64,000 nucleotides of DNA from Rebecca billardiae RCC1528 (Eukaryota > Protista > Haptophyta). Shown here piece by piece: positions 4,999 through 31,322 of the stretch; the stretch's first letter is position 1, and every line of letters starts with the position of its first letter. The notes under the pieces are model-generated. The model searched no databases. It worked only from the letters and a program-made list of their open reading frames with translations, and was not told the DNA's origin. The position numbers were made by a program, and so were the translations under genes. The stretch spans positions 1,054,001 to 1,118,000 of the forward strand of contig OZ251244.1 in the NCBI GenBank assembly GCA_965240325.2, read 5' to 3'.

Positions 4999-5489
4999 TA
5001 CTGCTTTATTAATAATGAATCCGTGCGCACTCATCGTCAGGCCGAGCAGCAGCGCACATATCATCCTGATACGGCTGACTTATTGCCGCCGCGCGCCAGT
5101 AGAAGTTGGGCGACTTGGCGGGCGTCAACGCGCGGCGGGCGGCACTTCTCACTCATCACGCGTCATCATCACATCACTGGCTCGTCATGCGGCTGTGGAC
5201 GGGCGGCCACCGCGCGGCGTCAGGCCCCGCGTGCCGTCCCCGCGACTGCTCGGTAGTGGCTGTAGATGGCGGTCGTGCTGCATGTTGTACATTCGAGCAG
5301 CAGTAGTCGGGCTGTCGGCATGATCGCCTTGCTGCGGCGGCTAACACGCTTGGCGCAACATGTACGCCTCAGAGGGTAAGAGTTTGGGTCGGCGCAGGTC
5401 ATGGCCGTGATGAATGAGGCGACGACGGGGGCCGCGACCCGGACTCCGCTACACGGCGGGAGTAGCCTTGACTGTGAAGGGGACTTGAT

Positions 5490-7712
5490 TCAGAGCAAGT
5501 AGTGCGCACGAGTCGGAGTAGGGCTGCTTGCAGCAGTGGCTGCCTTTGCAGCGCCGGAGCGGTGCGCGTACCCGTAGTAGTGCTGCTTGATGGCCACGGC
5601 CACGGCGCCTAGGGCAACGGCGGCCATGCCGACTCCTGCCAGCATGCCGACCACCGCTCCGCCTGCGTGCGGCTGCGACAGCGCGTGCGACACCGGCAGA
5701 CCGCGAGGAGCTGGCTCGGCGCGCGCCGCAATGAGGGAGGGCTCGAAGAGCTCGGCGGGGAGGCCAGGGGTGAGCCGGCGAAGCAGCGTCTCGGCGCCAT
5801 GCCCGAGTGTCCCCAGGCCGGTGGTCAGGTCGTAGCCGACCGTAGCGTTGTAGCGCACGGCGGGGTTGTAGCACGAGCTGTACGGCCGCGGCTTCGCGGG
5901 GAAGGCCGGCGCGCCGTAATCGCCCCAGCCGTTGTTGCCGACGGTCACGTCATAGAAGGCGGGGGCGGCCGAGCCCGCCGTCTCCGCGTGCGCGCGGTAC
6001 AGCAGCGGGTTGATCCAGCCGAAGCGCTCGCCCGTGAACGCGAGCGAGATCAGGCCGGCCATCACGGGCGATGCGATCGACGTGCCAAACACACAGGTCT
6101 CCGCACCCCCGAAGACGATGGCAAAGTTGGCGCCGACCGCGGCCACGTCCGGATAGGTCCGCGCGCGCGGCGCCGGGCTGCCGAGCTGCCAGGAGAAGTC
6201 GTAGCCGGCGTCGGCCGTGAACACATCGCTGATGCCGCCTCCGCTCGTGATCGTCGCCGGCCCCGCCGCGCCCGGGACGCCGTCCGCCATCGTCGTCGTC
6301 TCGCACTCGCGGCAGCCCAGCCCGGCCTCGAATGTGGTCGCTCCCACGGCCGTCACCCACGGGCACGACGCCGGGAACTCGGGGCGGTACGCGTTGCACG
6401 CGTAGCTGCCGTTCCTCGCGCCCGAGCAGCCGCCGTCGCCGCTCGAGGCGAACGTCGTGATTCCCGCGAGCGCGAGCACGTACAGCTCGTCACAGACCGC
6501 GCGCAGCGCCTCCTTCTGCCCCTCGGTCACGGTGTAGCCCGGGGCGCTGCCGAGCGGCTCGGCGCCGGCGTCGTAGCCCTCGGGCGCGCCGTACGAGATG
6601 GAGAGGAAGTCGGGCGTCGGCCCCGCCGCCTCGTCGCGCTCGACGAGCGTGTGCACGTACTGCACGAGCGCCGTGGTGAAGCCGCTCTGGATCTCGCTCA
6701 GCATGGTGAGGCCTGTGCCAAGGCTCACAAACTCGCCCTCCGCGTGCTGGTTGACCGTGAGCGCTGCCTGCACGTCCAGCGCCGCCTCCTGATCGACATT
6801 GGAAGTGCAGCTGGTGCACAGCCCGCTCGAGACGCCGTCCGCCGTGTACACCGCGGTCACGCGCGCGCTCGTCCGCGCGCCAGTCCGCGCCTGCAGGCAC
6901 AGCAGGTCGGCCGGGTCGAACTGCGCGCCCGACGTGCCCGGCGAGAACTCGACGAGCCCGATGCGCGCGCGCGCAGCCGACGCGTTGAAGGTCGGGTTCA
7001 CGCCGTACGAGTTGGCGAGCGCGCGCCACGTGACGGACTGGTACTGCTCGATGCGCTCGACGACTGCCTCCGCGGTGCACGCCGCCGGCAGGGCGTCCAC
7101 GCCCAGCGGTGGCGGGTGGGTGACGCGCGCCGGCGTGCTCGGCGCCGCGCCGAGCAGCCGCAGGTCAAAGAGCGCGCCCATGCAGTGCGCGTCGGTGGGG
7201 ATGGGCGTGCCCTCGATGGTCTCCGCCGCGAGGTCGACGACCTTTTGGAGCGGCCACGCGTCAAACGCCGCGGTCGACTCGGCGCTCGGCTGGGTGCCGT
7301 TGCACACCATCTGCTTGTTCTTCATGCCGGTGCCGGACGCCTGCGCGGTGGCGCACACGAGCGCAAGCACGTTGGCCTTGGCGGGCGGGCCCTCGAGGAC
7401 GGCGTAGCGCCCGCCGAGCAGGCGCCGGGCCACGGTGAAGCCGATGGCCTCGTACAGCCCGAGCTCGTGCGCGGCGGCCTCCGCCGAGCAGCTCAGCTCG
7501 ATCCGCTCGGCTGCGGCGGACAGGCTGAGGTAGTGACGGCTCGCCGCGACGCGCGCGAGCTCGGCCGCGTCCGTCTGGTGGCGCGCACGGCGGAGCGCGA
7601 GGGTGAACTGCACGCGTGCTGCCCCGCCTGCCGCGGGGTCGGCACCGAGCGCGAGTGCGGGTAGGCTGGCGAGCATCAGCCATGCGGCGGCGCGTGTGCC
7701 ACGCGAGCCCAT
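5490..7712 (-). CDS. Sedolisin/tripeptidyl-peptidase I (S53 family) with signal peptide, prodomain and C-terminal TM helix; copy 1
   Basis: Catalytic E-x3-D (QEAALDVQ), SISYG, oxyanion SSGDGG, FPASCPWVTAVG, SGGG, YPDVAA, nucleophile GTSIASP, Ca-site YDVTVGNN…GYDLTTGLG. Intronless. Confidence 0.93.
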   Translation of the reverse strand: MGSRGTRAAAWLMLASLPALALGADPAAGGAARVQFTLALRRARHQTDAAELARVAASRHYLSLSAAAERIELSCSAEAAAHELGLYEAIGFTVARRLLGGRYAVLEGPPAKANVLALVCATAQASGTGMKNKQMVCNGTQPSAESTAAFDAWPLQKVVDLAAETIEGTPIPTDAHCMGALFDLRLLGAAPSTPARVTHPPPLGVDALPAACTAEAVVERIEQYQSVTWRALANSYGVNPTFNASAARARIGLVEFSPGTSGAQFDPADLLCLQARTGARTSARVTAVYTADGVSSGLCTSCTSNVDQEAALDVQAALTVNQHAEGEFVSLGTGLTMLSEIQSGFTTALVQYVHTLVERDEAAGPTPDFLSISYGAPEGYDAGAEPLGSAPGYTVTEGQKEALRAVCDELYVLALAGITTFASSGDGGCSGARNGSYACNAYRPEFPASCPWVTAVGATTFEAGLGCRECETTTMADGVPGAAGPATITSGGGISDVFTADAGYDFSWQLGSPAPRARTYPDVAAVGANFAIVFGGAETCVFGTSIASPVMAGLISLAFTGERFGWINPLLYRAHAETAGSAAPAFYDVTVGNNGWGDYGAPAFPAKPRPYSSCYNPAVRYNATVGYDLTTGLGTLGHGAETLLRRLTPGLPAELFEPSLIAARAEPAPRGLPVSHALSQPHAGGAVVGMLAGVGMAAVALGAVAVAIKQHYYGYAHRSGAAKAATAASSPTPTRAHYLL

Positions 7713-7948
7713 GCCGTCGTCGTACGTAGTCGCGGAGGTCGACGAGGAGCGCGCGCTTAATTGGCTGATGAGGCTCGCGTGGCCGGGTTGAGTGCTCACG
7801 AACCACGCTCGCGGTGTATTTTCGTGCAACAACCACATGGAAAGTTCTGGACTTGACGAATGACTGAATCTCGATCAGCTTCGTTGGCACGCGCTATAGT
7901 ATTTGTTTCGTCGTTGATTGGGCACGATTGTAAAGTGCTTGTCGTGCT

Positions 7949-8121: not shown

Positions 8122-9059
8122 CTTCGAAACGACGTCGACGTCCTTCCCACTACGTAGATGGATATGGATAGATAGATTTGTGCTTCGTCAAATACATTGT
8201 ACAGTGTGTTGCCCATAAGCACCGCTGCCAGCAAGGCCCGCTGCCAGGTTCTTTTTGGGTACTCATCACGGGCAAGTTGGGTAGCCGTAAGCCGTGGGCG
8301 GCGTCAAGTGGATTACAGGTCGTCGATGGTTCAGAAGGAATTCGATGAGGGCAGAATGATCTGAGACAAAATCCCGGAGCGTGTTTTGCGCTCGACCACG
8401 ATGGCGCTCACGCCCATCGCGCACGTCGTTGTGGAGGGCATCAGACGAAGACTTCAAGCTGCGAGTCTCGTGGGCTAACTCCATGCCGCTGCGAGGAGCA
8501 CGAGCCCCATCAAGTTATCCTCACTTTGGGTGGGGGAGGGCAATAATTTGAGACAAACCGCGTGCGCGCACGCCCGAAGGGCTCACCATGACTGGGGAGA
8601 GCAAGCTTCCCATGGGCTCTTGACGCGTATCTGGCGTCCCTATACTACCTCCCATGGCATGGCCAGCCGTCAGGTTGGCGTGGCCCTTGTAGTAGTAGAC
8701 TACCTTGCTCACGTCACTGAAGGGCACAGTGCATCGCGGTTCGCGGGCGTCTCACAGTGGCGGGGCATGTTTGGCGGCTACGTTTGGTGCGTGCAGGCCA
8801 GGCGTGGGCAGCGGAGCAGCCGGCAAACGAGCGGAGGTGCCAGGCATGCACCTTGGGCACCCATGCGACGCGCCTCGACAGACTTGCGTCCACCTCACCG
8901 GGCGCTGTAGCGCGTGCGAGGCGGGCGCCATGCACCAAGCCCAGTGGGCACTACTGGGCCGCCACTGGGCCGCCGCCTTTGTCTCAAAGTGCCCTCTGTC
9001 TCATTCTGCCCTCATCGACCTGTAGTGTGCGTCTTAGTAAATAACCGCGAGTGTGTCGT

Positions 9060-9325
9060 ATGGCGGGGCTGCGCGCGCTGCACTGCCCCGCGCTGCGCCG
9101 ACGCCGAGGCCCGCTGCCCGGTCCCGGCGAGGGCTCGTAGAGCGTGCGCCGACCGGAGGCAGTCACGCGGCTGTCGACCGAGCACGACTGGCACGCGCGG
9201 CCGGCGCGGCCGGCAGCACGCTGACTCACGTCGGAGGCAGGGTGTTGATGGGCTCCGCTCGAAGCCCCGAATCCACACACGTTGGATGGCCGAGCTGGTC
9301 GTGGCGGGCGCACGTGTACCGCGTG
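9060..9325 (+). repeat. Degenerate copy of the ~220-bp tRNA-Leu-headed repeat
   Basis: Same internal blocks as the 21.5-22.2 kb units, plus the head gttggatggccgagctggtc at 9281. Confidence 0.72.
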
Positions 9326-9747
9326 CTGCCACTCGCGCCGCCAGCCTGGCCAGAGGGTCGAGCGATGCGACTACCGGCTAATGATGGAGCCGCGCGCGCT
9401 ACGCGCGCCGCTGCTGTGCGCCGCTGCGCGGCATTCCGCCACGACCACTGCGGTGGCGGCGCGCGCGCGTCGACGCCAGTGGACTCGCTCGGTGCGTCGT
9501 CGAGGGCTTCCGCTCCGGGCGATGCAGAGTGATGCTGGGCGATAATGAGGGGGGGGGGCGACTGTGAGGAGCGCTGATGATAATCTGCCTGCTGAGCTGG
9601 TGTTTGTCATATCCCTTACTCCTACTAGCTACAGTATGAGTACTGCTGCTAGTTGGTGACCGATATCTGCTACAGCTGACTGACTCTGACAGTGACGCCT
9701 GCTGCCCGTTGCATAATGCATGCCAGCACCACGACGTTATTAACAAT

Positions 9748-9779
<32 letters not shown>

Positions 9780-9784
<5 letters not shown>

Positions 9785-10391
9785 AGCTGACGCAGCCTGG
9801 GACGCGCATCTCAGCAGATGGCGTCGCCGCTGGGACGTCAGGGCCGGCGCCGCACCAGGCGGGCCGGCGTCATCAGCTACGGAGCAGTGGCTGGCTGGCG
9901 GCGCGCGCGCGCGGCGCGCGCGGCGGCAGGAGCGCGAGCGCAGCAGCGCTGGCGCGGATCGACGTGGACGCGGAGCGCGGACGCGGCAGCGCGGACGCGG
10001 AGCGACACGGACGCGGCGCGTGCGCGGGCGGTACGGCCCGGCGCAGCGCGACACGGTGACGTCGCACGGGCATGGCCCGGACGCCATCGTGGGAGTCCAT
10101 CCAGATTTCCACTTTCGGAAAAGTGGGAATCCGGCTGAGGGCGGACGGACGAGGACGTCCGGGAGTTACGTCGGGACGGGCGGGTTTTCGGGAAGGTAAC
10201 GCATTCCCCGGAGCCGGCCGCGACGTGGTCACCCCGCGACCAAAAAAGGTCGGCGGGAGGTTAGCTTGTCTTCGTAAAGGAGCGAAGGGAAGGAGGTTGC
10301 CTCTCGTGGTCGACATCGACGACGCGCCCGAGGACGCGCCGGTGAGCTCTTAGCAGGGCTCGAGACGCTCGGAGCTCGCGTTTACCCAATA
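9780..10391 (+). repeat. 5' LTR (TGTTG…CAATA)
   Basis: Direct repeat of 16321-16932. Confidence 0.95.
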
Positions 10392-16320: not shown

Positions 16321-16932
16321 TGTTGAGCTGACGCAGCCTGGGGCGCGCATCTCAGCAGATGGCGTCGCCGCTGGGACGTCAGGGCCGGCGCCGCACCAGG
16401 CGGGCCGGCGTCATCAGCTACGGAGCAGTGGCTGGCTGGCGGCGCGCGCGCGCGGCGCGCGCGGCGGCAGGAGCGCGAGCGCAGCAGCGCTGGCGCGGAT
16501 CGACGTGGACGCGGAGCGCGGACGCGGCAGCGCGGACGCGGAGCGACACGGACGCGGCGCGTGCGCGGGCGGTACGGCCCGGCGCAGCGCGACACGGTGA
16601 CGTCGCACGGGCATGGCCCGGACGCCATCGTGGGAGTCCATCCAGATTTCCACTTTCGGAAAAGTGGGAATCCGGCTGAGGGCGGACGGACGAGGACGTC
16701 CGGGAGTTACGTCGGGACGGGCGGGTTTTCGGGAAGGTAACGCATTCCCCGGAGCCGGCCGCGACGTGGTCACCCCGCGACCAAAAAAGGTCGGCGGGAG
16801 GTTAGCTTGTCTTCGTAAAGGAGCGAAGGGAAGGAGGTTGCCTCTCGTGGTCGACATCGACGACGCGCCCGAGGACGCGCCGGTGAGCTCTTAGCAGGGC
16901 TCGAGACGCTCGGAGCTCGCGTTTACCCAATA
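16321..16932 (+). repeat. 3' LTR
   Basis: Direct repeat of 9780-10391. Confidence 0.95.
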
Positions 16933-18179: not shown

Positions 18180-21100
18180 TCATATCGTCAGGCAGCAGCG
18201 CACATATCATCGTCCTGATACGGCTGACTTGCCGCGGCGGGCCAGTCGCCTAAGAAGCTGGGCGTCAACAACGCGCGCGGGCGGCATCTCATCACGCGTC
18301 ATCTAATCACTGGCTCGTCATGCGGCTGTGGACGGGCGGCCACCGCGCGGCGTCAGGCCCCGCGTGCCGTCCCCGCGACTGCTCGGTAGTGGCTGTAGAT
18401 GGCGGTCGTGCTGCATGTTGTACATTCGAGCAGCAGTAGTCGGGCTGTCGGCATGATCGCCTTGCTGCGGCGGCTAACACGCTTGGCGCAACATGTACGC
18501 CTCAGAGGGTAAGAGTTTGGGTCGGCGCAGGTCATGGCCGTGATGAATGAGGCGACGACGGGGCCGCGGCCCGGAGTCCACTACACGGCGGGAGTAGCCT
18601 TGACTGTGAAGGGGACTTGCTTCAGAGCAGGTGGTGCGCACGAGTCGGAGGAGCAGGGCTGCTTGCCGCAGTGGCTGCCTTTGCAGCGCCGGAGCGGCGC
18701 GCGTACCCGTAGTAGTGCTGCTTGATGGCCACGGCCACGGCGCCAAGAGCAACGGCGGCCATGCCGACTCCTGCCAGCATGCCGACCACCGCTCCGCCTG
18801 CGTGCGGCTGCGACGACGCGTGCGACACCGGCAGACCGCGAGGAGCTGGCTCGGCGCGCGCCGCAATGAGGGAGGGCTCGAAGAGCTGGGCGGGGAGGCC
18901 AGGGGTGAGCCGGCGAAGCAGCGTCTCGGCGCCATGCCCGAGTGTCCCCAGGCCGGTGGTCAGGTCGTAGCCGACCGTAGCGTTGTAGCGCACGGCGGGG
19001 TTGAAGCACGAGCTGTACGGCCGCGGCTTCGCGGGGAAGGCCGGCGCGCCGATCTCGCCCCAGCCGTTGTTGCCGACGGTCACGTCATAGAAGGCGGGGG
19101 CGGCCGAGCCCGCCGTCTCCGCGTGCGCGCGGTACAGCAGCGGGTTGATCCAGCCGAAGCGCTCGCCCGTGAACGCGAGCGAGATCAGGCCGGCCATCAC
19201 GGGCGATGCGATCGACGTGCCAGACATAGGGTTCTCCACGCCCCCGAGGACGACGGCGAAGTTGGCGCCGACGGCGGCCACGTCCGGGTAGGCTCGCGCG
19301 CGCGGCGCCGGGCTGCCGAGCTGCCAGGAGAAGTCGTAGCCGGCGTCGGCCGTGAACACATCGCTGATGCCGCCTCCGCTCGTGATCAGCGGCGGCCCCG
19401 CCACGCCCAGGACGCCGTCCGCCATCGTCGTCGTCTCGCACTCGCGGCAGCCCAGCCCGGCCTTGAATGTGGTCGCTCCCACGGCCGTCACCCACGGGCA
19501 CGACGCCGGGAACTCGGGGCGGTACGCGTTGCACGCGTAGCTGCCGTTCCTCGCGCCCGAGCAGCCGCCGTCGCCGCTCGAGGCGAACGTCGTGATTCCC
19601 GCGAGCGCGAGCACGTACAGCTCGTCACAGACCGCGCGCAGCGCCTCCTTCTGCCCCTCGGTCACGGTGTAGCCCGGGGCGCTGCCGAGCGGCTCGGCGC
19701 CGGCGTCGTAGCCCTCGGGCGCGCCGTACGAGATGGAGAGGAAGTCGGGCGTCGGCCCCGCCGCCGCGTCGCGCTCGACGAGCGTGTGCACGTACTGCAC
19801 GAGCGCCGTGGTGAAGCCGCTCTGGATCTCGCTCAGCATGGTGAGGCCGGTGCCAAGGCTCACAAACTCGCCGTCCGCGTGCTGGTTGACCGTGAGCGCT
19901 GCCTGCACGTCCAGCGCCGCCTCCTGATCGACATTGGAAGTGCAGCTGGTGCACAGCCCGCTCGAGACGCCGTCCGCCGTGTACACCGCGGTCACGCGCG
20001 CGCTCGTCCGCGCGCCAGTCCGCGCCTGCAGGCACAGCAGGTCGGCCGGGTCGAACTGCGCGCCCGACGTGCCCGGCGAGAACTCGACGAGCCCGATGCG
20101 CGCGCGCGCAGCCGACGCGTTGAAGGTCGGGTTCACGCCGTACGAGTTGGCGAGCGCGCGCCACGTGACGGACTGGTACTGCTCGATGCGCTCGACGACT
20201 GCCTCCGCGGTGCACGCCGCCGGCAGGGCGTCCACGCCCAGCGGTGGCGGGTGGGTGACGCGCGCCGGCGTGCTCGGCGCCGCGCCGAGCAGCCGCAGGT
20301 CAAAGAGCGCGCCCATGCAGTGCGCGTCGGTGGGGATGGGCGTGCCCTCGATGGTCTCCGCCGCGAGGTCGACGACCTTTTGGAGCGGCCACGCGTCAAA
20401 CGCCGCGGTCGACTCGGCGCTCGGCTGGGTGCCGTTGCACACCATCTGCTTGTTCTTCATGCCGGTGCCGGACGCCTGCGCGGTGGCGCACACGAGCGCA
20501 AGCACGTTGGCCTTGGCGGGCGGGCCCTCGAGGACGGCGTAGCGCCCGCCGAGCAGGCGCCGGGCCACGGTGAAGCCGATGGCCTCGTACAGCCCGAGCT
20601 CGTGCGCGGCGGCCTCCGCCGAGCAGCTCAGCTCGATCCGCTCGGCTGCGGCGGACAGGCTGAGGTAGTGACGGCTCGCCGCGACGCGCGCGAGCTCCGC
20701 CGCGTCCGTCTGGTGGCGCGCACGGCGGAGCGCGAGGGTGAACTGCACACGTGCCGCCCCGCCTGCCGCGGGGTCGGCACCGAGCGCGAGTGCGGGTAGG
20801 CTGGCGAGCATCAGCCATGCGGCGGCGCGTGTGCCACGCGAGCCCATGCCGTCGTCGTACTCGTAGTCGCGGAGGAGCGCGCGCGGCTTAATTGGCTGTT
20901 GATGAGCAGCTGCTCGTCCGCCGGGTGATCGCTCACGAACTACGCGCGCGGTTTTGATATCGTGATGCAATATATAATAACCACTCGTCATGCATGGAAA
21001 GTTCTGGACTTGACGAATGACTGAATTTCGATCAGCTTCGCTGGCACGCGCTATATTTGTTTCGTCGTTTATGCTTGTCGCACCTTTAGAACGACGTCGA

Positions 21101-21224: not shown

Positions 21225-21489
21225 TAAATCTACCCGCCCGACGGCGGGTAGATTTGTACATTCATTCACTGACGTCGTCGCAACGACTACTACGTCGTCA
21301 ACATGCTTGTACTTGTGTAATTCTGGCCGCGCCGCGCGTGGCGGCAATTCGCCATCAATCATGATATGCAGCGGCATGATGCAATTCTGCCGTATGGCGG
21401 AGCAGTGGGTAGTACGTCGTAATTCGAAAGCGCTAGCTCGTAGTTAGTCGTCTACTTAATCATCCGGACACGGTTCGGGCAGGTGATGA

Positions 21490-22174
21490 CGCCGGAGTTC
21501 AGGTCGGGGCGGGGCGGCGCGCGCTGCACTGCCCCGCGCTGCGCCAGCGCCGAGCCCGCCGCCCGGTCCGAGGGCCGTAGGCGTAGAGCGTACGCCGACC
21601 GGAGGCGGGCGCGCGGAGCCGGCCGTCGCGAACGCAGCGGCTGCGCGTGCCACGGCGTGGCAGCACTCGGCAGCGGCACTGTCCGAGGCCGCCGGGTGTT
21701 GATGGGGGCTCCGATCCAGCAAGCGCCTCCCCATCATCTGGTTGGGCGGCCGAGTTGGTCTGGCGGGCGGGGCGCGCACCGTACGAGCTGCCAAGCACCA
21801 CCGCCGAGCCCGCCGCCCGGCCCGAGGGCCGTAGAGCGTGCGCCGGCAAGACGGGTCAAGGAGGCGGGCGCGCGGCCATCGACCGAGCGCGCGGCGATGA
21901 GGTCCGAGTTGATCGGGGCTCCGCTCCGGAAGCCCGCCGGCGAAACCACACAGGTTGGATGGCCAAGCTGGTCTGGGCGGGGCGCGCACCGCACTGCACT
22001 GTGCCTCCTCCGCCGAGCCCGCCACCCGGCCCGAGGCGGGTAGAACGTGCACCGGCCGTCGACCGAGCACGCGCTGACGACGCCCGGCGCGCGTGACAGC
22101 ACGACTCGCAAGCACTCGGCTAGTCCGAGGCCAAGTGTTCACGTGGTCAGCGTCAGACGGCGCCCGATCATATC
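21490..22174 (+). repeat. About three diverged units of the tRNA-headed repeat preceding the homogeneous array
   Basis: Heads ggttgggcggccgagttggtc (21740) and ggttggatggccaagctggtc (21953, exactly 222 bp before 22175). Confidence 0.8.
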
Positions 22175-23949
22175 GGTCGGGTGGCCGAGTTGGTCGTGGC
22201 GAAACGCGCACGGCACTGCCCCGCGCCGCCGCCGAGCCCGCCGCCCGCCGGCTCGAGGCGGGGAGCGCGTGCGCCGCACCGGTCGTCGACCGCGGAGCGC
22301 GCGCGCAGCGGGCGTGCGCGAGTGGCCCAGCCACTATCTACTCGGCTCGCCCGACACGCACGGGGCCCGCCGCGCCGCGCACCCCCCCAGGCGCAAGGTT
22401 GGGTGGCCGAGTTGGTCGTGGCGAAACGCGCACGGCACTGCCCCGCGCCGCCGCCGAGCCCGCCGCCCGCCGGCTCGAGGCGGGGAGCGCGTGCGCCGCA
22501 CCGGTCGTCGACCGCGGAGCGCGCGCGCAGCGGGCGTGCGCGAGTGGCCCAGCCACTATCTACTCGGCTCGCCCGACACGCACGGGGCCCGCCGCGCCGC
22601 GCACCCCCCCAGGCGCAAGGTTGGGTGGCCGAGTTGGTCGTGGCGAAACGCGCACGGCACTGCCCCGCGCCGCCGCCGAGCCCGCCGCCCGCCGGCTCGA
22701 GGCGGGGAGCGCGTGCGCCGCACCGGTCGTCGACCGCGGAGCGCGCGCGCAGCGGGCGTGCGCGAGTGGCCCAGCCACTATCTACTCGGCTCGCCCGACA
22801 CGCACGGGGCCCGCCGCGCCGCGCACCCCCCCAGGCGCAAGGTTGGGTGGCCGAGTTGGTCGTGGCGAAACGCGCACGGCACTGCCCCGCGCCGCCGCCG
22901 AGCCCGCCGCCCGCCGGCTCGAGGCGGGGAGCGCGTGCGCCGCACCGGTCGTCGACCGCGGAGCGCGCGCGCAGCGGGCGTGCGCGAGTGGCCCAGCCAC
23001 TATCTACTCGGCTCGCCCGACACGCACGGGGCCCGCCGCGCCGCGCACCCCCCCAGGCGCAAGGTTGGGTGGCCGAGTTGGTCGTGGCGGGGCGCGCACG
23101 ACACTGCCCCGCGCCGCCGCCGAGCCCGCCGCCCGCCGGCTCGAGGCGGGGAGCGCGTGCGCCGCACCGGTCGTCGACCGCGGAGCGCGCGCGCAGCGGG
23201 CGTGCGCGAGTGGCCCAGCCACTATCTACTCGGCTCGCCCGACACGCACGGGGCCCGCCGCGCCGCGCACCCCCCCAGGCGCAAGGTTGGGTGGCCGAGT
23301 TGGTCGTGGCGAAACGCGCACGGCACTGCCCCGCGCCGCCGCCGAGCCCGCCGCCCGCCGGCTCGAGGCGGGGAGCGCGTGCGCCGCACCGGTCGTCGAC
23401 CGCGGAGCGCGCGCGCAGCGGGCGTGCGCGAGTGGCCCAGCCACTATCTACTCGGCTCGCCCGACACGCACGGGGCCCGCCGCGCCGCGCACCCCCCCAG
23501 GCGCAAGGTTGGGTGGCCGAGTTGGTCGTGGCGAAACGCGCACGGCACTGCCCCGCGCCGCCGCCGAGCCCGCCGCCCGCCGGCTCGAGGCGGGGAGCGC
23601 GTGCGCCGCACCGGTCGTCGACCGCGGAGCGCGCGCGCAGCGGGCGTGCGCGAGTGGCCCAGCCACTATCTACTCGGCTCGCCCGACACGCACGGGGCCC
23701 GCCGCGCCGCGCACCCCCCCAGGCGCAAGGTTGGGTGGCCGAGTTGGTCGTGGCGAAACGCGCACGGCACTGCCCCGCGCCGCCGCCGAGCCCGCCGCCC
23801 GCCGGCTCGAGGCGGGGAGCGCGTGCGCCGCACCGGTCGTCGACCGCGGAGCGCGCGCGCAGCGGGCGTGCGCGAGTGGCCCAGCCACTATCGACTCGGC
23901 TGCCCGACACGCACGGGGCCCGCCGCGCCGCGCCCCTCCCCAGGCGCAA
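22175..23949 (+). repeat. Tandem array of eight near-identical 222-bp units, each starting with nt 1-21 of tRNA-Leu(AAG)
   Basis: Heads at 22175 (one mismatch), 22397, 22619, 22841, 23063, 23285, 23507 and 23729. The next head, at 23950, is the real tRNA. Confidence 0.97.
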
Positions 23950-24032
23950 GGTTGGGTGGCCGAGTTGGTCTAAGGCGTGGCGTTAAGGCCGCCATCTCTT
24001 CGGAGGCGCGAGTTCGAATCTCGTCCCAGCCA
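23950..24032 (+). tRNA. trnL-AAG: tRNA-Leu(AAG)
   Basis: Acceptor GGTTGGG/CCCAGCC, D arm GCC…GGC, anticodon stem TGGCG/CGCCA with loop TTAAGGC, long variable arm CTC-TTCG-GAG, T arm GCGAG-TTCGAAT-CTCGT, and a T run at ~24049. Confidence 0.95.
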
Positions 24033-24290
24033 CAAGGTTATTGTTGCCTTTTGCTGTGAGGGGCCAGCTTTTGGCCGCGCGCGCGGTGTCGTGTTGAGCG
24101 CGCGCGCGCGTGCTCCAGCCCGCGCCGAGCGCGTGACCTCGCATCCCGGGGCCGCTCGACTGGCCGGGGAACGGAGTCCAGAGGCCACGACGACCGCTCC
24201 CGCGCAAACCACCCCCGACCCGATGGTAAACCCCGCGGACGCTTGACCGCGGACGGCCGGTCTGTTAGCTGCGACGCCGGGGCCGCGGAT

Positions 24291-24930
24291 GGCGCTGCGG
24301 CTGGGCCGCGCGGGTCGGGCACGTTGTGGTCGTGTGCGCGGCGCCGGCAGGAAGCTCGGTGTATCCCGCCGTCGTGGGGACGCGGTAGAGGCACCCGGCA
24401 TCGCTGACTCGCAGCGCCACAACTTCGGCTCACGGCCGCGCCTCGCCCGCGGTCGCGGAGCGTTCCGCGCGGAGTCAGTCGGCGGCGCGGCGGTGCGGTT
24501 GCCGACGAGTCGGCCACTCGGCCACCGCTCGGCGCTCTCCGCCTTGTTTAACGGCACCAGGGCGCTGTCTTCCGTGCCCGCTGCGCGTGGTACGGCCGAG
24601 CTACCAGGGAAGCGCGCTGGCTTACGGCGCCGTGCACCGCGGCAGCCATCGTTGTCGTGTGATCAAGGAGTGACAGAAGGACTGATCCTCAGCCATCCGG
24701 ACATTTCTGTCCGGCTTTCGACCTCCTCAGCGCTCAGAATGATAGTCAGATTGCGATCAGGTCAGCGATGGCGGCCGCGACCGCGCGCACCAACGGACGC
24801 GATCTCATTTGGCGCATTGTCACTCATCGCGCACGCCTAGCCTTCTGCTCTACTGCGCGCGACGACCCGTACCGATCGCGCCACGGTGAGATCGCCGGTC
24901 GGCCCAACTGATCCGCCGCCGCCGGCCGCC
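24291..24930 (+). repeat. ~650-bp direct repeat, copy 1 (copy 2 ~26363-27010)
   Basis: ggcgctgcggctgggccgcgcgggtcgggcacgttg…gatcaaggagtgacagaagga…ggtcggcccaactgatc occurs in both. Confidence 0.88.
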
Positions 24931-25929
24931 AGCCCGGCGCCGGCGGCGCGGCTCGCGCAGCGCTGGGCGCGGCGCTCGCGTGGCCTCCGCCTGCGCGGCG
25001 CCTCGCCATGCCGCGAGGGCGAGCCAGGCCGAGGCTCCGCACGCCACCCGGCGCCCCCGCTCCCCACGGGCGCCATGCCCGCCGGAGCAGTGGCGCCGGC
25101 CACGCCACGCCACGCCGGCCCGCCCTCGGCCGCGCCGCCTGCGCGCCGTCGGCTGCGGCGGGAGGCCGGCCCGACCCGGTACGCGTCGCGCGCGCTCCCC
25201 CGCCCCAGCCCGCGTGCCGTGGCCGCGGGCGCGCGCGCCGCCGCGCGCGGACGGCGCGCCTCGCGCCCACCTGCCTGGCCGGCCGAGCGCCTTCCGGCGG
25301 AGCACGTGGCCGAGGGTGGGGTCGTAGTAGACGAGGGGCTCGGTGAGTGAGCGCGCCGCCGAGTGCGCTCTGGGCACGCTCTAGAGAGAGAGAGAGAGAA
25401 AGAGTTCACACAGACGCTGATGCGGTGGTCGCGCGCGGGCGCACGGCGCTCGCCCAATGCATGGGCCTGCAACCTCCCCGTCGCCCCTCCGCGGCTGTGC
25501 CACCGGGAGGCGGGCCGTCGCTCGTGTTCCGACGACGGACGCGCGCCCGGCGGGCGGTGGCTTGCTCGTGGGCGGCCACTCGCGTGCGTGGAGCACTGTC
25601 TGCGTCGAGCAGTCACTTCCGCCGTGCGCGCCCGGCGCGCGCTGCCCGCGCATGCGTCCGTGACTAGCGACGTTCGGTGCTCGGGCCTCGCCGGAGCCAT
25701 TCGGGCACGCTGAACGGCGGCGAGGCGTGCGCGCGGCTCTCCCTGCCACACCCCTGTACCGCAACGGCCACGTCCCTACGAGGTCGCCATCTCGCCCGCC
25801 GGCAGCGCCCGTTCCTTCCCGGCCACGCCGCGCGCGGCGGACGAGGTGGAAGATGGGGGCGCGGGGGCGGGGGCAGGCTGGGCTGGTGCGTGGCGCCAGC
25901 CACGTCCGCGACGCGCTCGCGCCACGCGC

Positions 25930-26310
25930 CGCCGAGCAGCGCGCGCCAGGCATGCGTGAGCTTGCTGGCCGAGTGCTGTCACGGCGCGCGCGCTCTGGTC
26001 GACGGCCGCGCGCACGCTCTTTAGTCTATTCCCTCGGGCCGGGCGGCGAGCTCGGCGGTGGCAGCACAGGGCAGTGCGGTGCGCGCCCCGCCCAGACCAG
26101 CTCGACCGCCGCGCGCGCGGGCCTCGGCCCCTCCGCCCCGGAGGCCGGAGCCAGCAAGTGCTGGCCGAGTGCCGCTACCTACGGCGCGCGCGCCTCCGAC
26201 TCGCTCACGAGTCACGGCCGACTGGACGGCCGCGCGCGTGACGCCTCCGCTCGGCGCACGCTCTACCCTCCGGCCGGGCGGCGGGCTCGGCGGCGGCGGC
26301 GCGAGGCAGT
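25930..26310 (-). repeat. Inverted, degenerate copies of the tRNA-headed repeat
   Basis: The reverse complement contains ggtcgagctggtctgggcggggcgcgcaccgcactgccc, tagagcgtgcgccg and cagcactcggc. Confidence 0.65.
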
Positions 26311-26362
26311 GAGCGGAGCGCCCCTCCACCGGTCACCCGGTCTGCGCCGCTGCACGGACGAG

Positions 26363-27010
26363 GGCGCTGCGGCTGGGCCGCGCGGGTCGGGCACGTTGCG
26401 GTTGTGTGCGCGGCCCCGGCAGGAAGCTCGGTGTATCCCGCCGTCATGGGGACGCGGTAGAGGCACCCGGCATCGCTGACTCGCAGCGCCACAACTTCGG
26501 CTCACGGCCGCGCCTGGTGCCGCCGGAGCGTTCACCGCACGACCGTCAGTCGGCGGCGCGGCGGTGCGGTTGCCGACGAGTCGGCCACCGCTCGGCGCTC
26601 TCTGGCGCCGGCGCCAGGGCGCTGTCTTCTGTGCGCGGTGCGCGTGGCACGGCCGAGCGACCAGGCAAGCGCGCGTCCCGTCAAGGGTGGCTTGCCGCGT
26701 GGCTGCGCCGTGCACCGCGGCAGCCATCGTTGTCGTGTGATCAAGGAGTGACAGAAGGAGTAGCCATCCGGACATTTTTGTCCGGCTTTCGGGACCTCAG
26801 CGCGGCAGAATGCGATGGCGGCCGCGACCGGGACGCGGCTATCTCGTGGCGCATCTTATCAGTCATCACGTCGTGGTCGTCATGGCCTCGGTGGTGCGCG
26901 CCGCGCACGCCTGGCCTTGTGATCTACTGCGCGTGACGACCCTTCCGTTCGCGCCACGGTGACATCGCGCCGGTCGGCCCAACTGATCGGCCGCCGCCGG
27001 CCGCCAGCTG
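26363..27010 (+). repeat. ~650-bp direct repeat, copy 2
   Basis: Matches 24291-24930. Confidence 0.88.
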
Positions 27011-27185: not shown

Positions 27186-29282
27186 TCACCACAGCCGGGC
27201 GGCGCTACCGCTCGCCGCCGCCGGCGCCGGCGCCGGCGGCCAGCCGAGCCGCCGCCACCCCGCCGCCGCCCCGCCGCCCCAGCCGCCGTCGTCGGAGCGC
27301 TGCTCGGTGGCGGCCGCGCCGCCGGCGCCGCCGCCCCACGCATGGTGGCCGTCTCCGCCAAACCAGCCGCCGCCGCCGCGCTCATCATGGCCCCAGCGCA
27401 ACGCCGCCGACGGCGGCGCGCCGCCGCCACCCTCCGCCCACGCCGCCGCCGCCGAGTCGCGACTCCGGTCGTCCGCGAGCGCGTGCAACCGCGCCGCCTC
27501 CGCCGCGAGCGCGCCGGCGAGGCTGAGGCTCGGCAGCCGCGGGAGCGCGAGCGCGTGCGCGGCCGCGACAGCGGGCGAGAAGCTCGGCGGCGCCTCGCGC
27601 GCGCACGCGGCGTGGAGGCGGTGGGCGCCGGCGCCGTCCGGCCGCCGCGCGCCGTGTCGCCGCCGCGCGCCGCGCGCGCGCGGCGCCGGCGGCAGCGGCG
27701 ACGGCGGCGACAGCGGCGGCCAGCCGTCGCCGTCAGACGCGCGCGCGCGCGGCAGCGGCGGCGGTGACGGCGGCGGCGACGAGGACGACGACGCCGAAGC
27801 GGACGCCGCCGCGGCACGCCGCGTCTCGGCCGGAGCCGCGCCCAGCGCGAGCTTGAGCGCCGCAGTGATCGCCCGCACGGCGCGGTCGTCGTCCGCGCCG
27901 CCGCCGCCGCGTCCGCCACCGCCGTAGCCGCCGCCGCCGCCGCCGCCGCCGCCGCGCCCGCCACCGCCGCGTCCACCGCCGCCGGCACCGGCAGCCGGCG
28001 GCGCGACCGCAGACGCGCGGCCGTCAGCCGCGGCGCCGATCGCGCCCCACGCTGCCCGCGCGCGCGCCAGCGCCGCGCCCTCCGCGGCGGCCGCGCCGGC
28101 GGCGCGCCGCCACGCCAGCGCGCCGCGCCACCGCGCCCACGCGCGCCGCAGCCGCGGCGCGGCGGCGGGCGGCGCGGGGACAGCGGCGGCGGCGGAGCGC
28201 GCCGCGGCGCGGCGGCGCCAGCGGCGCGCGGCCGCCGCCGCCGCCGCGCTCTCCCCGCTCGGGCGGCGGCGCGGCCCCCCGCGCGCCAGCGCGCCGCGCC
28301 ACCGCGCCCACGCGCGCCGCAGCCGCGCGGCGGCGGCGGCGGGCGGCGCGGGCGCGGCGGCGGCGGCGGCGGCGGCGCGCGCCGCGGCGCGGCGGCGCCA
28401 GCGGCGCGCGGCGGCGGCGCGCGCCGCCGCCGGCGCGCTCTCTCCGCGCGGCCCCCCGCGCGCCAGCGCGCCGCGCCAGCGCGCCCACGCGCGGCACAGC
28501 CGCATGGCGGCGGCGGCCGCCGCGGCGGCGTCGGCGTCGGCGCGGCGCGCGGCGCGCGGCGCGAGCCCGCGGCGCCAGCGCGCCCACGCGCGCCGCCGGC
28601 GCGCGGCGGCGGCGGCGTCGGCGCGCGCGCGCGCGCGCGCGGCGCGGCGGCGCCAGCGGCGCGCGGCGAGGCGCGCGCCGGCGCGCCGGTGCGGCCCGCG
28701 CGCCGCCCCGCCCGCGAGCGTCGTCGCCGCCGCCGCCGCCGCCGCCGGCGGCGCGCGCGCGAGCGCGCGCAGCGCGGCGCGCAGCGCGGCCGCGCGGCCG
28801 CGCGCGGCGGCGCGCGCGCCGCGCGCGCCGCGCGCGGCGCGCGCCGCCGCGGCCGCGCGCAGCGCGCGCAGCGCGAGCACGTGGCGCAGCGCGGCGGCCC
28901 ACGCGGCGCGCCGCGCGCCGCGCGCCGCGTCGCGCGCCCACGCGCGCAGCCGCGCCGCGCCGCGCCGCGCCGCGGCGGCGCGCGCGCGCGCGGCGGCGCG
29001 CGCGCGGCGCGCGCGCGCGCCGCGCCGCCAGCGGCGCAGCGCGGCGCGCGCGCCGGCGCGCGCGGCGCGCGCGACGGCGGCGCGCCACGCGGCGAGCGCG
29101 CGCGCGAGCGGGCGGCGCGCGCGGCCCCACGGCGGCCGCGCCGCGCGCGCGCGCGCGCGCCACGCGCCGCGCCGCGCCGCCGCGCGCAGCGCGGCGCGCA
29201 GCGCGGCGGCGCGCGCGGCGGCGCGCGCCGCCGCGCGCGCCGCCGCGCGCGCCGCCGCGCCGCCGAGCCGCGCGAGCGCGCG

Positions 29283-29313
<31 letters not shown>

Positions 29314-30260
29314 AGCGTGCGCACGGCCCACGCGCGCGCGGTGCGCCGCGCCCACGCCGCGAGCGCCACGCCCGCGCGCGCGCGCGCCACCACCGCCGCG
29401 AGGTCGGCGGCGCGCGCCGCGGCCGCGGCCGCGGCCGCCCACGCGCGCAGCGCGCGGCCGCGCGCGCGCGCCGCGCCGCCGCCGCCGCCGCCGCCGCCGC
29501 GGCGCGGCGCGGCGGCGCGCGCGGCGCGGCGCGCGCGCGCCCACGCGCCGCCGCGCGCGAGCGCCCCGCCGAGGCGCGCCGCGCGCCCCAGCCGCGCCGT
29601 GCCGCCGCGCACCGCCGCGTCCGCCGCGGCGGCGCGCAGCGCGCGCAGCGCGCGCGCCGCGCGCGCCGCGTCGCCCGCGGCCGCGGCGCGCGCGGCCGCG
29701 CGCGCGGCCGCGGCCGCGGGCAGCGCGGCGCGCGCAAAGGCGCGCCAGCGCGCGCGCGCGAGCAGCAGCCGCGCGAGCGCGCGCTCGACCCGCCGCGCGT
29801 GCGCCCGCGCCCACCACCGCCGCCCGCCGCGGCGCAGCGCGGCGCGCGCGCGCGCGGCGGCGCGCGCGGCGCGGCGCGCGGCGGCGGCGCCGAGCGCGCG
29901 CAGCGCGCGCGCGGCCGCGCGCCGCCGCCGGTGCGCGCGCGCGCGGCGGCGCGCGCCCCGCGCGGCGGCGGCGCGCGCGGCGCGCTCGGCCCAGCGCGCG
30001 AGCGCGCGCCGCGCCGCCGCCGCCGCGCCGCCGCCGCGCGCCGCCGCCGCCGCCGCCGCGGCGACGCGGCTCGCGGCGGCGCGCGCCGCGCCGCGCCGCG
30101 CCGCGGCCGCGCGCCACGCGCGCAGCGCCGCGGCGGGCGGCAGCGCGCGCGCCGCCGCGAGCTCGGGCGGCGGCGGCGCGGGCAGCAGGCGCGCCATCGT
30201 CTCCGCCGTCGGCCCCCGCGGCGGCGCCGCCGCCGTCGCCGCCGCCATCGTCGCCGCCGT

Positions 30261-30860: not shown

Positions 30861-31240
30861 CTTGTAGAGATGGCTTTTCTCGCGTCCGTGGACGGGCGGG
30901 CGTTTCGCAATTCGTCCCTAAAGTTGCGCCGCGGCAGCCGCCCGGCGGCGGGGCGCGCCAGCGCGCAGGCCGGCGGCGGCTCCGAGGGGCGGACTGGCGG
31001 CGGTCGCGCCCGAGCTGACGCAGCGCAGCGCGCGCGGTCCGGGCCGATCGAGCGGGGCAAGGTGACGGCGCGTCCGTAGCGTCGGCCCGCGGCCACGAGC
31101 GTGTTGCTGGCGTGAGTGTCCCGCGGCGGGTCCGCCCGGCGCCAGGCGGCGTGAGTGTGTGTGGTGATATGATTTTAATCACAGCTTCGTGTGCGACGCA
31201 CTCTTCTTGTACCCACCGCAAGCGTGAACAGAGTCCGGAA

Positions 31241-31322
31241 GGGGAGTTGTCCGAGTGGTTAAGGAGTCGGCTTTAGGCGCCGATGCAGTTTCTGCGCGCA
31301 GGTTCGAATCCTGTGCTCCCCA
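31241..31322 (+). tRNA. trnL-TAG: tRNA-Leu(TAG)
   Basis: Acceptor GGGGAGT/GCTCCCC, D arm TCC…GGA, anticodon stem TCGGC/GCCGA with loop TTTAGGC, variable arm GCAG-TTT-CTGC, T arm GCAGG-TTCGAAT-CCTGT. Confidence 0.95.

Follow-up and report, generated by a model that had tools for sequence, protein, structure and literature searches.

Why would the only gene for a particular tRNA stand at the end of a long row of truncated copies of its own beginning? This question is raised by a stretch of 64,000 nucleotides (nt) from the haptophyte Rebecca billardiae RCC1528 (assembly GCA_965240325.2, contig OZ251244.1, positions 1,054,001 to 1,118,000 of the forward strand), hereafter referred to as the window, with positions counted from its first letter. 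In this window, which has a GC content of 72%, the gene for tRNA-Leu with anticodon AAG is directly preceded on its 5′ side by eleven head-to-tail units with a total length of 2.5 kb, whose heads repeat the 5′ end of that same gene. Below, we describe the composition and age of this array, its recurrence at other nuclear tRNA genes with every breakpoint at or within the anticodon loop, and the reasons why these features point to a local tandem duplication that is anchored at the gene itself.

The presence of the array was evident from several types of data. Tandem Repeats Finder (TRF) reported a single array at 22175-23970 with a period of 222 bp, 8.1 copies, and 99% matches, free of indels, while ARAGORN placed an intact tRNA-Leu(AAG) gene at 23950-24033 on the plus strand, which Rfam scored as a tRNA at 50.3 bits against a cut-off of 29. 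The gene does not encode a CCA end, and it was the sole copy that BLAST found in the genome. Its first 21 nt, the head GGTTGGGTGGCCGAGTTGGTC, occur exactly eight times in the 72-Mb genome, i.e., at seven unit heads and in the tRNA gene, and the reversed control pattern gave no forward match and one reverse match. Additional head copies carry one mismatch (at 21740 and 22175) or three mismatches (at 21953). The tandem array at tRNA-Leu(AAG) is real and far above chance, and the agreement of TRF, ARAGORN, Rfam, and the 21-mer counts confirms what the first-pass annotation of this DNA had reported, namely an array that is headed by the 5′ end of the tRNA and ends in the intact gene. That annotation had also taken the copied part to be the 5′ 21 nt of the tRNA. 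The 21-mer heads were indeed found, but the copy does not end there: After nt 1-21 and a gap of 6 nt (TAAGGC is absent), it resumes with GTGGCG, which corresponds to nt 28-33, and unit and gene part company after nt 33, from the anticodon loop’s first base on. Each unit thus contains 21 + 6 = 27 nt of tRNA-derived sequence, next to a non-tRNA part of ~195 bp in the young units. Constant unit length, high identity, head-to-tail order, and confinement to a single locus characterize the array as a minisatellite or local tandem duplication.

The units, all on the plus strand, fall into two age classes. The eight near-identical units of the first-pass annotation were all recovered at 22175-23949 (seven of 222 bp and one of 221 bp; each with an A box, no B box, and no TTTT), but upstream of them there are three older units rather than two. 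The additional one, u0 (21482-21739), is the oldest and most decayed, with a barely recognizable head, 64% identity to the young consensus, and a TGTTGATGGGG remnant 44 nt 5′ of the next head. It is followed by u1 (21740-21952; 213 bp, one head mismatch) and u2 (21953-22174; 222 bp, three head mismatches, and TGTTCACGTGG 39 nt 5′ of the next head), and u0 to u2 together display 64 to 66% identity to the young consensus. Among the young units, u4, u5, u6, u8, and u9 are identical and u3 has a single difference, while u7 has four differences and retains an ancestral GGG, the state found in all old units and in the relic copies described below. The unit that adjoins the tRNA gene, u10, has four private differences and is the most diverged of the young units; accordingly, it is not the newest. 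The array therefore displays two age tiers rather than a gradient, and the earlier view that the units are homogeneous near the tRNA as a result of polarized growth at that end does not stand. Because the 6-nt deletion in the head is common to the young units and the relics (on contig C14 and at 9280), the young block is a recent burst out of one pre-existing pseudo-unit and not a series of fresh events. Conservation among the old units and relics is lowest in the middle and higher in the head, the ~80 nt that follow it, and the final ~50 nt, and the head is not unique in this respect.

The same architecture was also observed at other tRNA genes. The assembly comprises 72 Mb in 41 contigs, including two organelle-like contigs that are dense in tRNA genes, and our survey covered ~30 nuclear tRNA genes including Leu(AAG), i.e., part of the genome’s set. 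The comparison set consisted of 29 other nuclear tRNA genes (27 on sampled loci with ~3 kb of upstream DNA each, plus the tRNA-Leu(TAG) gene of the window), and the sampled loci amounted to ~146 kb in total. Two of these 29 genes, Arg(CCG) and Arg(TCT), are preceded by an array of this type. At tRNA-Arg(CCG) (gene at C16:1058414-1058488), TRF found units of 216 bp with 98% matches that fill the 3 kb upstream and span tRNA positions +1 to +36; the array has 36 units and reaches ~7.6 kb upstream, where its far end begins within the flank part of a unit and not at a head. A search with the head pattern and BLAST returned only the Arg(CCG) gene itself, as the pseudo-heads contain indels, and it was TRF on the locus that revealed the array. 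These pseudo-heads carry deletions of 1 and 2 nt and one substitution, and the 1-nt deletion lies inside the A box in all heads seen. At tRNA-Arg(TCT) (L068, G000:C7:1496411-1499531, minus strand), TRF found 2.2 units of 187 bp with 95% matches that cover +1 to +32, and each unit holds an upstream element, discussed below, together with tRNA nt 1-33; the pseudo-head lesions are one insertion and two substitutions. Small private lesions thus occur in the pseudo-heads of all three arrays, in the case of Leu as the 6-nt deletion. The truncated first Arg(TCT) unit adjoins CCCTA/CCCTAA-like repeats of the telomere type.

The copied part of the gene breaks off after nt 33 for both Leu and Arg(TCT) and after nt 36 for Arg(CCG), in each case at or in the anticodon loop. 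Besides the arrays of Arg(CCG) and Arg(TCT), both of which run into a tRNA gene, the ~146 kb sampled hold no long-period array with at least 95% matches. If one assumes a probability of ~0.001 that an array boundary falls within a given 75-bp gene, then three hits in 30 genes would have a probability of roughly 4e-6, and we roughly estimate a probability of ~0.02 for three breakpoints to fall within 6 nt of a tolerated range of 44 nt. The first-pass annotation had held that the link between array and tRNA was no accident and had pointed to other tRNA loci as places where arrays headed by their own 5′ ends might be found; the recurrence at Arg(CCG) and Arg(TCT) bears out both. Three otherwise unrelated array units (window 22469-22533; L059; L068) resemble one another weakly over a GC-rich stretch (p 0.003-0.02 versus shuffles) in which each has a (GC)5-6 alternation, although genome composition may be all that this reflects. 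Whole-gene duplication was seen only once among the sampled tRNA loci, at L048 (G000:C14:83810-87506), where a distance of 326 bp separates two complete tRNA-Gly(GCC) genes arranged in tandem.

Further evidence on the origin of the units comes from the DNA upstream of ordinary tRNA genes. When the 80-nt stretches ahead of 25 nuclear tRNA genes without an array were searched for motifs, an element with the consensus TGTTCATATAC emerged, which begins 35-49 nt 5′ of the gene in 24 of the 25 cases and scores 8.6-19.4 bits, against a background with a 95th percentile of 8.1 bits on random 50-nt stretches. The element is TATA-like, often with CC next to it, and its copy in the window lies at 31202-31212, before tRNA-Leu(TAG). 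It is probably the promoter element of this alga for RNA polymerase III (Pol III) and TFIIIB. The tRNA-Leu(AAG) and tRNA-Arg(CCG) genes are without such an element, whereas the Arg(TCT) units each combine a full-score copy (16.9 bits) with a head; the element is therefore absent in two of three array-bearing genes versus one of 25 others (Fisher p about 0.02, in a tiny sample). The young Leu units do not have it either, including the one that precedes the real gene (scores of 1.0 and -4.8). In the old Leu units and the relics, however, we observed TGTTGATGGGC, TGTTGATGGGG, or TGTTCACGTGG at positions -38 to -44 relative to the next head. These matches score 2.1-4.6 bits, which is under the background of 8.1 bits, and they agree with the TGTTCATATAC-type element in place and in their first half. 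By position more than by score, this suggests that the unit body may be the gene’s own promoter-bearing 5′ flank. The sequence GGTGTTGATGGG before the old heads, at one point considered B-box-like, was reread as such a decayed upstream promoter element.

Outside the array, the unit family is confined to three relic loci with 1.5-2 old-type units each. The first, at 9055-9440 on the plus strand, holds ~1.6 units, with a head at 9280-9300 that has three mismatches, and lies beside a paralogous subtilase gene. The second, at 25940-26335 on the minus strand, holds ~2 units in inverted orientation and abuts a repeat at 26360-27008. The third, at C14:878672-879029, abuts a copy of a non-coding segment that accompanies the unit family, which we call segment X. 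No tRNA was found at any of the three loci, and the heads at all three carry the 6-nt deletion. Segment X itself lies at 24247-24933 on the plus strand, 213 bp downstream of tRNA-Leu(AAG), and has paralogues at 26360-27008 (79%) and C14:879025-879595 (74%); Pfam found nothing credible in it. A second duplication, 2.9 kb long and 95% identical, joins 5033-7918 with 18184-21072 and contains a subtilase (Peptidase_S8) gene on the minus strand, of which one copy flanks the array and the paralogue lies near the 9055-9440 relic. Because the relics adjoin the subtilase paralogue or copies of segment X, the pseudo-unit is old and was dispersed by segmental duplication. The unit-bearing intergenic DNA beside the subtilase duplication is only 72% identical, versus 95% for the block that contains the genes, and the subtilase genes may therefore have been homogenized by gene conversion. 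Matches on contig C3 to unit positions 50-145 were unrelated to the family and represent proline-rich coding sequence of low complexity.

How could such an array arise? We consider it slightly more probable than not that the array is a tandem duplication of the 5′ flank and the first third of the gene, which started when a replication fork was arrested at the Pol III complex, later expanded, and is selectively neutral. In this scenario, a fork would arrest in the gene at the complex of Pol III, TFIIIC, and TFIIIB, and the template would be switched back by about one nucleosome or Okazaki length (187-222 bp). For Leu(AAG), a duplication from about -190 to about +35, with its breakpoint at the anticodon loop, would leave a single whole gene at the 3′ side, with truncated copies ahead of it. 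The copies would then have decayed and lost 6 nt, and segmental duplication would have taken some of them to the three other loci. More recently, one pseudo-unit would have been re-amplified to eight by unequal exchange, slippage, or rolling-circle copying, and unequal exchange or rolling-circle copying could likewise account for the later growth of such arrays in general. Being the sole gene for tRNA-Leu(AAG), the complete copy would have been kept at the 3′ end. Recurrence at tRNA genes, together with a shared breakpoint midway between the A and B boxes, argues that the trigger is the gene or its protein complex. Such arrest has a counterpart in yeast, where tRNA genes stop replisomes whichever way the genes are oriented, and the arrest is “centered precisely on the tDNA” (10.1101/082008).

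Several points weigh against this origin by fork arrest. The arrest mechanism is derived from the geometry of the arrays, and we infer the neutrality of the copies as well as the trigger. The original junctions are too old or too rearranged for an inspection of microhomology. The restriction of arrays to the 5′ side is weakly established, as it comes from views of ~100-300 bp of downstream DNA per other tRNA gene, varying with the locus. The uneven conservation within the old units and relics could reflect constraint, and the loss of the upstream element at array-bearing genes hints at a functional link between element and array.

These last points lead to a different account, in which the units serve as spare promoters: The units, each a tRNA promoter with upstream element, start site, and A box but without the 3′ part of the gene, would load TFIIIB and Pol III, transcription would read through into the complete gene, RNase P would trim the product, and selection would act on the output of a single-copy, heavily used tRNA, perhaps to offset a lost upstream element. 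We regard this as unlikely, and as distinctly unlikely the broader notion that such arrays are a working device, with rows of promoters that feed read-through into one gene, kept by selection at single-copy tRNA genes without the TATA-like element. Several observations would fit: The A box is kept in all Leu heads, the head-proximal parts are the best conserved of the old units, each Arg(TCT) unit combines the full-score element with a head, Leu(AAG) and Arg(CCG) do not have the element that is present in 24 of 25 other genes, and no TTTT occurs from 21480 up to the run at 24049-24052 on the plus strand, past the gene, which is the first candidate Pol III terminator (nuclear tRNA genes of this alga have T-run terminators on their 3′ side). 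At 79% GC, however, a lack of TTTT in the array is what chance predicts, both the upstream element and the B box are missing from the eight young Leu units, a 1-nt deletion affects the A box in every Arg(CCG) pseudo-head seen, and relics persist at three loci where there is no tRNA to feed. The B box is the anchor of TFIIIC in tRNA gene (tDNA) insulators and at extra-TFIIIC sites. Across 21480-23949, we found no B box with up to two mismatches, and that of the real gene, at 24011, is the only one. A reading of the array as an insulator or boundary is therefore not supported, and the suggestion of the first-pass annotation that the array might be a battery of A boxes or a chromatin boundary finds the A boxes kept in the Leu heads yet the B box nowhere in the array and the A box of Arg(CCG) damaged. 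A small-RNA source or target, which would produce or meet 5′ tRNA-fragment-like RNAs or small interfering RNAs from a transcribed repeat, seems most unlikely to us: It draws on the eleven sense copies of the tRNA 5′ end at one place and on nothing else, while the apparent length of 21 nt is created by the 6-nt deletion, with similarity resuming at nt 28-33, the young units have no promoter of their own, and the RNA fold of the unit is unremarkable against shuffles (z -0.78; 44 of 200 shuffles fold at least equally well).

The first-pass annotation had also proposed repeated site-specific insertion, for instance of a Dada-like transposon, that regenerates the 5′ end of the tRNA. More generally, a circular non-autonomous element of ~200 bp could have integrated repeatedly at the first 21 nt of the gene, and the order of head, unit, head, and rest of the gene is the layout expected from recombination at attachment (att) sites; furthermore, a head or partial head opens the oldest unit of the Leu array as well as the truncated unit with which the Arg(TCT) array starts. 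Against this stand the Arg(CCG) array, which opens inside flank sequence, the four private changes in the unit that adjoins the tRNA, which is not the newest, and the resemblance of the unit body to the native promoter region (in position, with a score below background), while the units of the three arrays share just a GC-rich stretch of low complexity. The units are non-coding, and no recombinase or transposase was found in or beside them, the neighboring open reading frames (ORFs) matching subtilase or nothing (by Pfam, with no Dada-specific profile), such that the search for a Dada or recombinase partner came back empty. Dada elements have lengths of 2.5-10 kb and a gene for a DDE transposase, produce 6-7 bp duplications, and disrupt members of multicopy gene families; tRNA-Leu genes are among their targets, and tandem Dada insertions occur (PMC3706591). 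The tRNA-Leu target and the tandem layout are thus alike, but the units of 222 bp, the 27-nt shared stretch with its internal deletion, and the single-copy target depart from Dada in size, transposase, duplication length, and target, and we consider integration very unlikely. Finally, the genome is rich in GC-rich tandem repeats (TRF) and the copy number comes from the assembly, which could suggest that an ordinary satellite happens to overlap the start of the tRNA, or that the array arose in assembly. Yet three of 30 nuclear tRNA genes have an array that ends inside the gene, with no comparable array elsewhere in the ~146 kb, the three breakpoints all lie in the anticodon loop, and collapse or stutter is opposed by the 2.5-kb length as well as by unit-specific variants (u3, u7, and u10); chance overlap or misassembly is in our estimate highly improbable.

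Other classifications of the units were also considered. The sequences CCCAGCCAC and GCGCGAGT, which are seen in units, could suggest whole decayed tRNA genes, but tRNA nt 34-84 aligned to young, old, and relic units no better than to shuffles (p 0.06-0.93), and CCCAGCCAC in the young units, taken as the 3′ acceptor strand of the tRNA, has only unrelated sequence opposite it when the old units are aligned and is thus not ancestral. As for a tRNA-derived short interspersed nuclear element (SINE), the A box is present but there is no B box, and the family occurs at four loci only, three of them within the same 20 kb. An Rfam scan of the window returned only the two tRNAs. Because 222 is divisible by three and stop codons are scarce at such a GC content, ORFs remain open in four frames across the array; when these were searched with Pfam, no stretch passed alone, and the matches were sums of eight weak repeats. 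With the B-box pattern used as a tRNA gene finder, 20 matched loci were blank in ARAGORN and also tRNA-free in Rfam; a genome-wide search for the upstream element plus A box gave an output dominated by (TA)n microsatellites, from which no list of arrays was obtained; and a metagenome scan with the head/body junction pattern returned >120 unrelated single matches and zero arrays.

Some other repeats were observed alongside. The window holds microsatellites and a pair of direct repeats of 612 bp that are 99.8% identical (9780-10391 and 16321-16932) and enclose 7.1 kb, which fits a young long terminal repeat (LTR) retrotransposon; this pair lies ~400 bp from the 9055-9440 relic. Together with T-run terminators and a tRNA-Leu that has the anticodon AAG and no encoded CCA, the microsatellites and the LTR pair identify the DNA as eukaryotic. 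At 28000-30200, just upstream of tRNA-Leu(TAG) at 31241, there is a 2-kb block of 94% GC with a degenerate periodicity of 171-177 bp. The 18-mer TGTCCGAGTGGTTAAGGA, identical to the D-arm of tRNA-Leu(TAG), has ~23 further nuclear copies, mostly as arms of perfect palindromes of ~110 bp that lie ~340 bp apart (at L208, G000:C10:2787450-2788200, and on C5, C7, C8, C13, C15, and C23). Neither ARAGORN nor Rfam found a tRNA in these palindromes, which gave generic hairpin matches below threshold only, and they may represent a tRNA-derived family of foldback elements or MITEs (miniature transposable elements with inverted repeats).

How does the array compare with known systems? Partial tandem duplications in general are common, and the array belongs with local tandem duplications and minisatellites; the unusual part is its recurrent, gene-anchored geometry, by which several nuclear tRNA genes of one genome have acquired arrays of like build, in which the 5′ flank is joined to the part of the gene that ends at the anticodon loop, at periods of 187-222 bp. 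Tandem repeats that include partial tRNA genes are known from animal mitochondrial control regions, where they form by slipped-strand or illegitimate-priming duplication. As here, they consist of head-to-tail copies of non-coding flank and a truncated tRNA gene beside one intact gene, and they are ascribed to replication errors at tRNA-shaped DNA. Unlike these repeats, which belong to an organelle with another mode of replication, the arrays described here are nuclear, involve Pol III genes, have periods of 187-222 bp, occur at several independent genes, and break in the anticodon loop. In the “tRNA-linked repeats” of Escherichia coli tyrT, about three units of 178 bp that contain the tRNA 3′ end lie downstream of the gene in a bacterial operon; their function was, to our knowledge, never settled. 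These resemble the present arrays in that tandem units each repeat a piece of a gene end, but their geometry is the mirror image, as the 5′ end is repeated upstream here. The tRNA gene arrays of Entamoeba (PMC2652664), like other tandem clusters of tRNA genes, are also head-to-tail, but their units are complete functional genes, whereas here all units but the last stop at the anticodon loop.

Our literature search turned up no account of arrays in which the flank and 5′ third of a nuclear tRNA gene are repeated ahead of it, and tRNA finders and repeat maskers will either overlook such arrays or mistake them for tRNA pseudogenes or SINEs. If selection does act on the arrays, they would represent a new form of tRNA gene regulation, which tunes the supply of a tRNA without extra gene copies. 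The closest comparison for the proposed trigger is with yeast tRNA genes, where replisome arrest and DNA damage in either orientation are described (10.1101/082008; PMC5413955); arrest and damage are what these papers treat, and we saw in them no mention of a tandem duplication of the flank and 5′ third. If the fork-arrest origin is correct, the arrays would be a natural, base-resolved record of the sites at which replisomes fail at Pol III genes and of how far back a template switch can reach.

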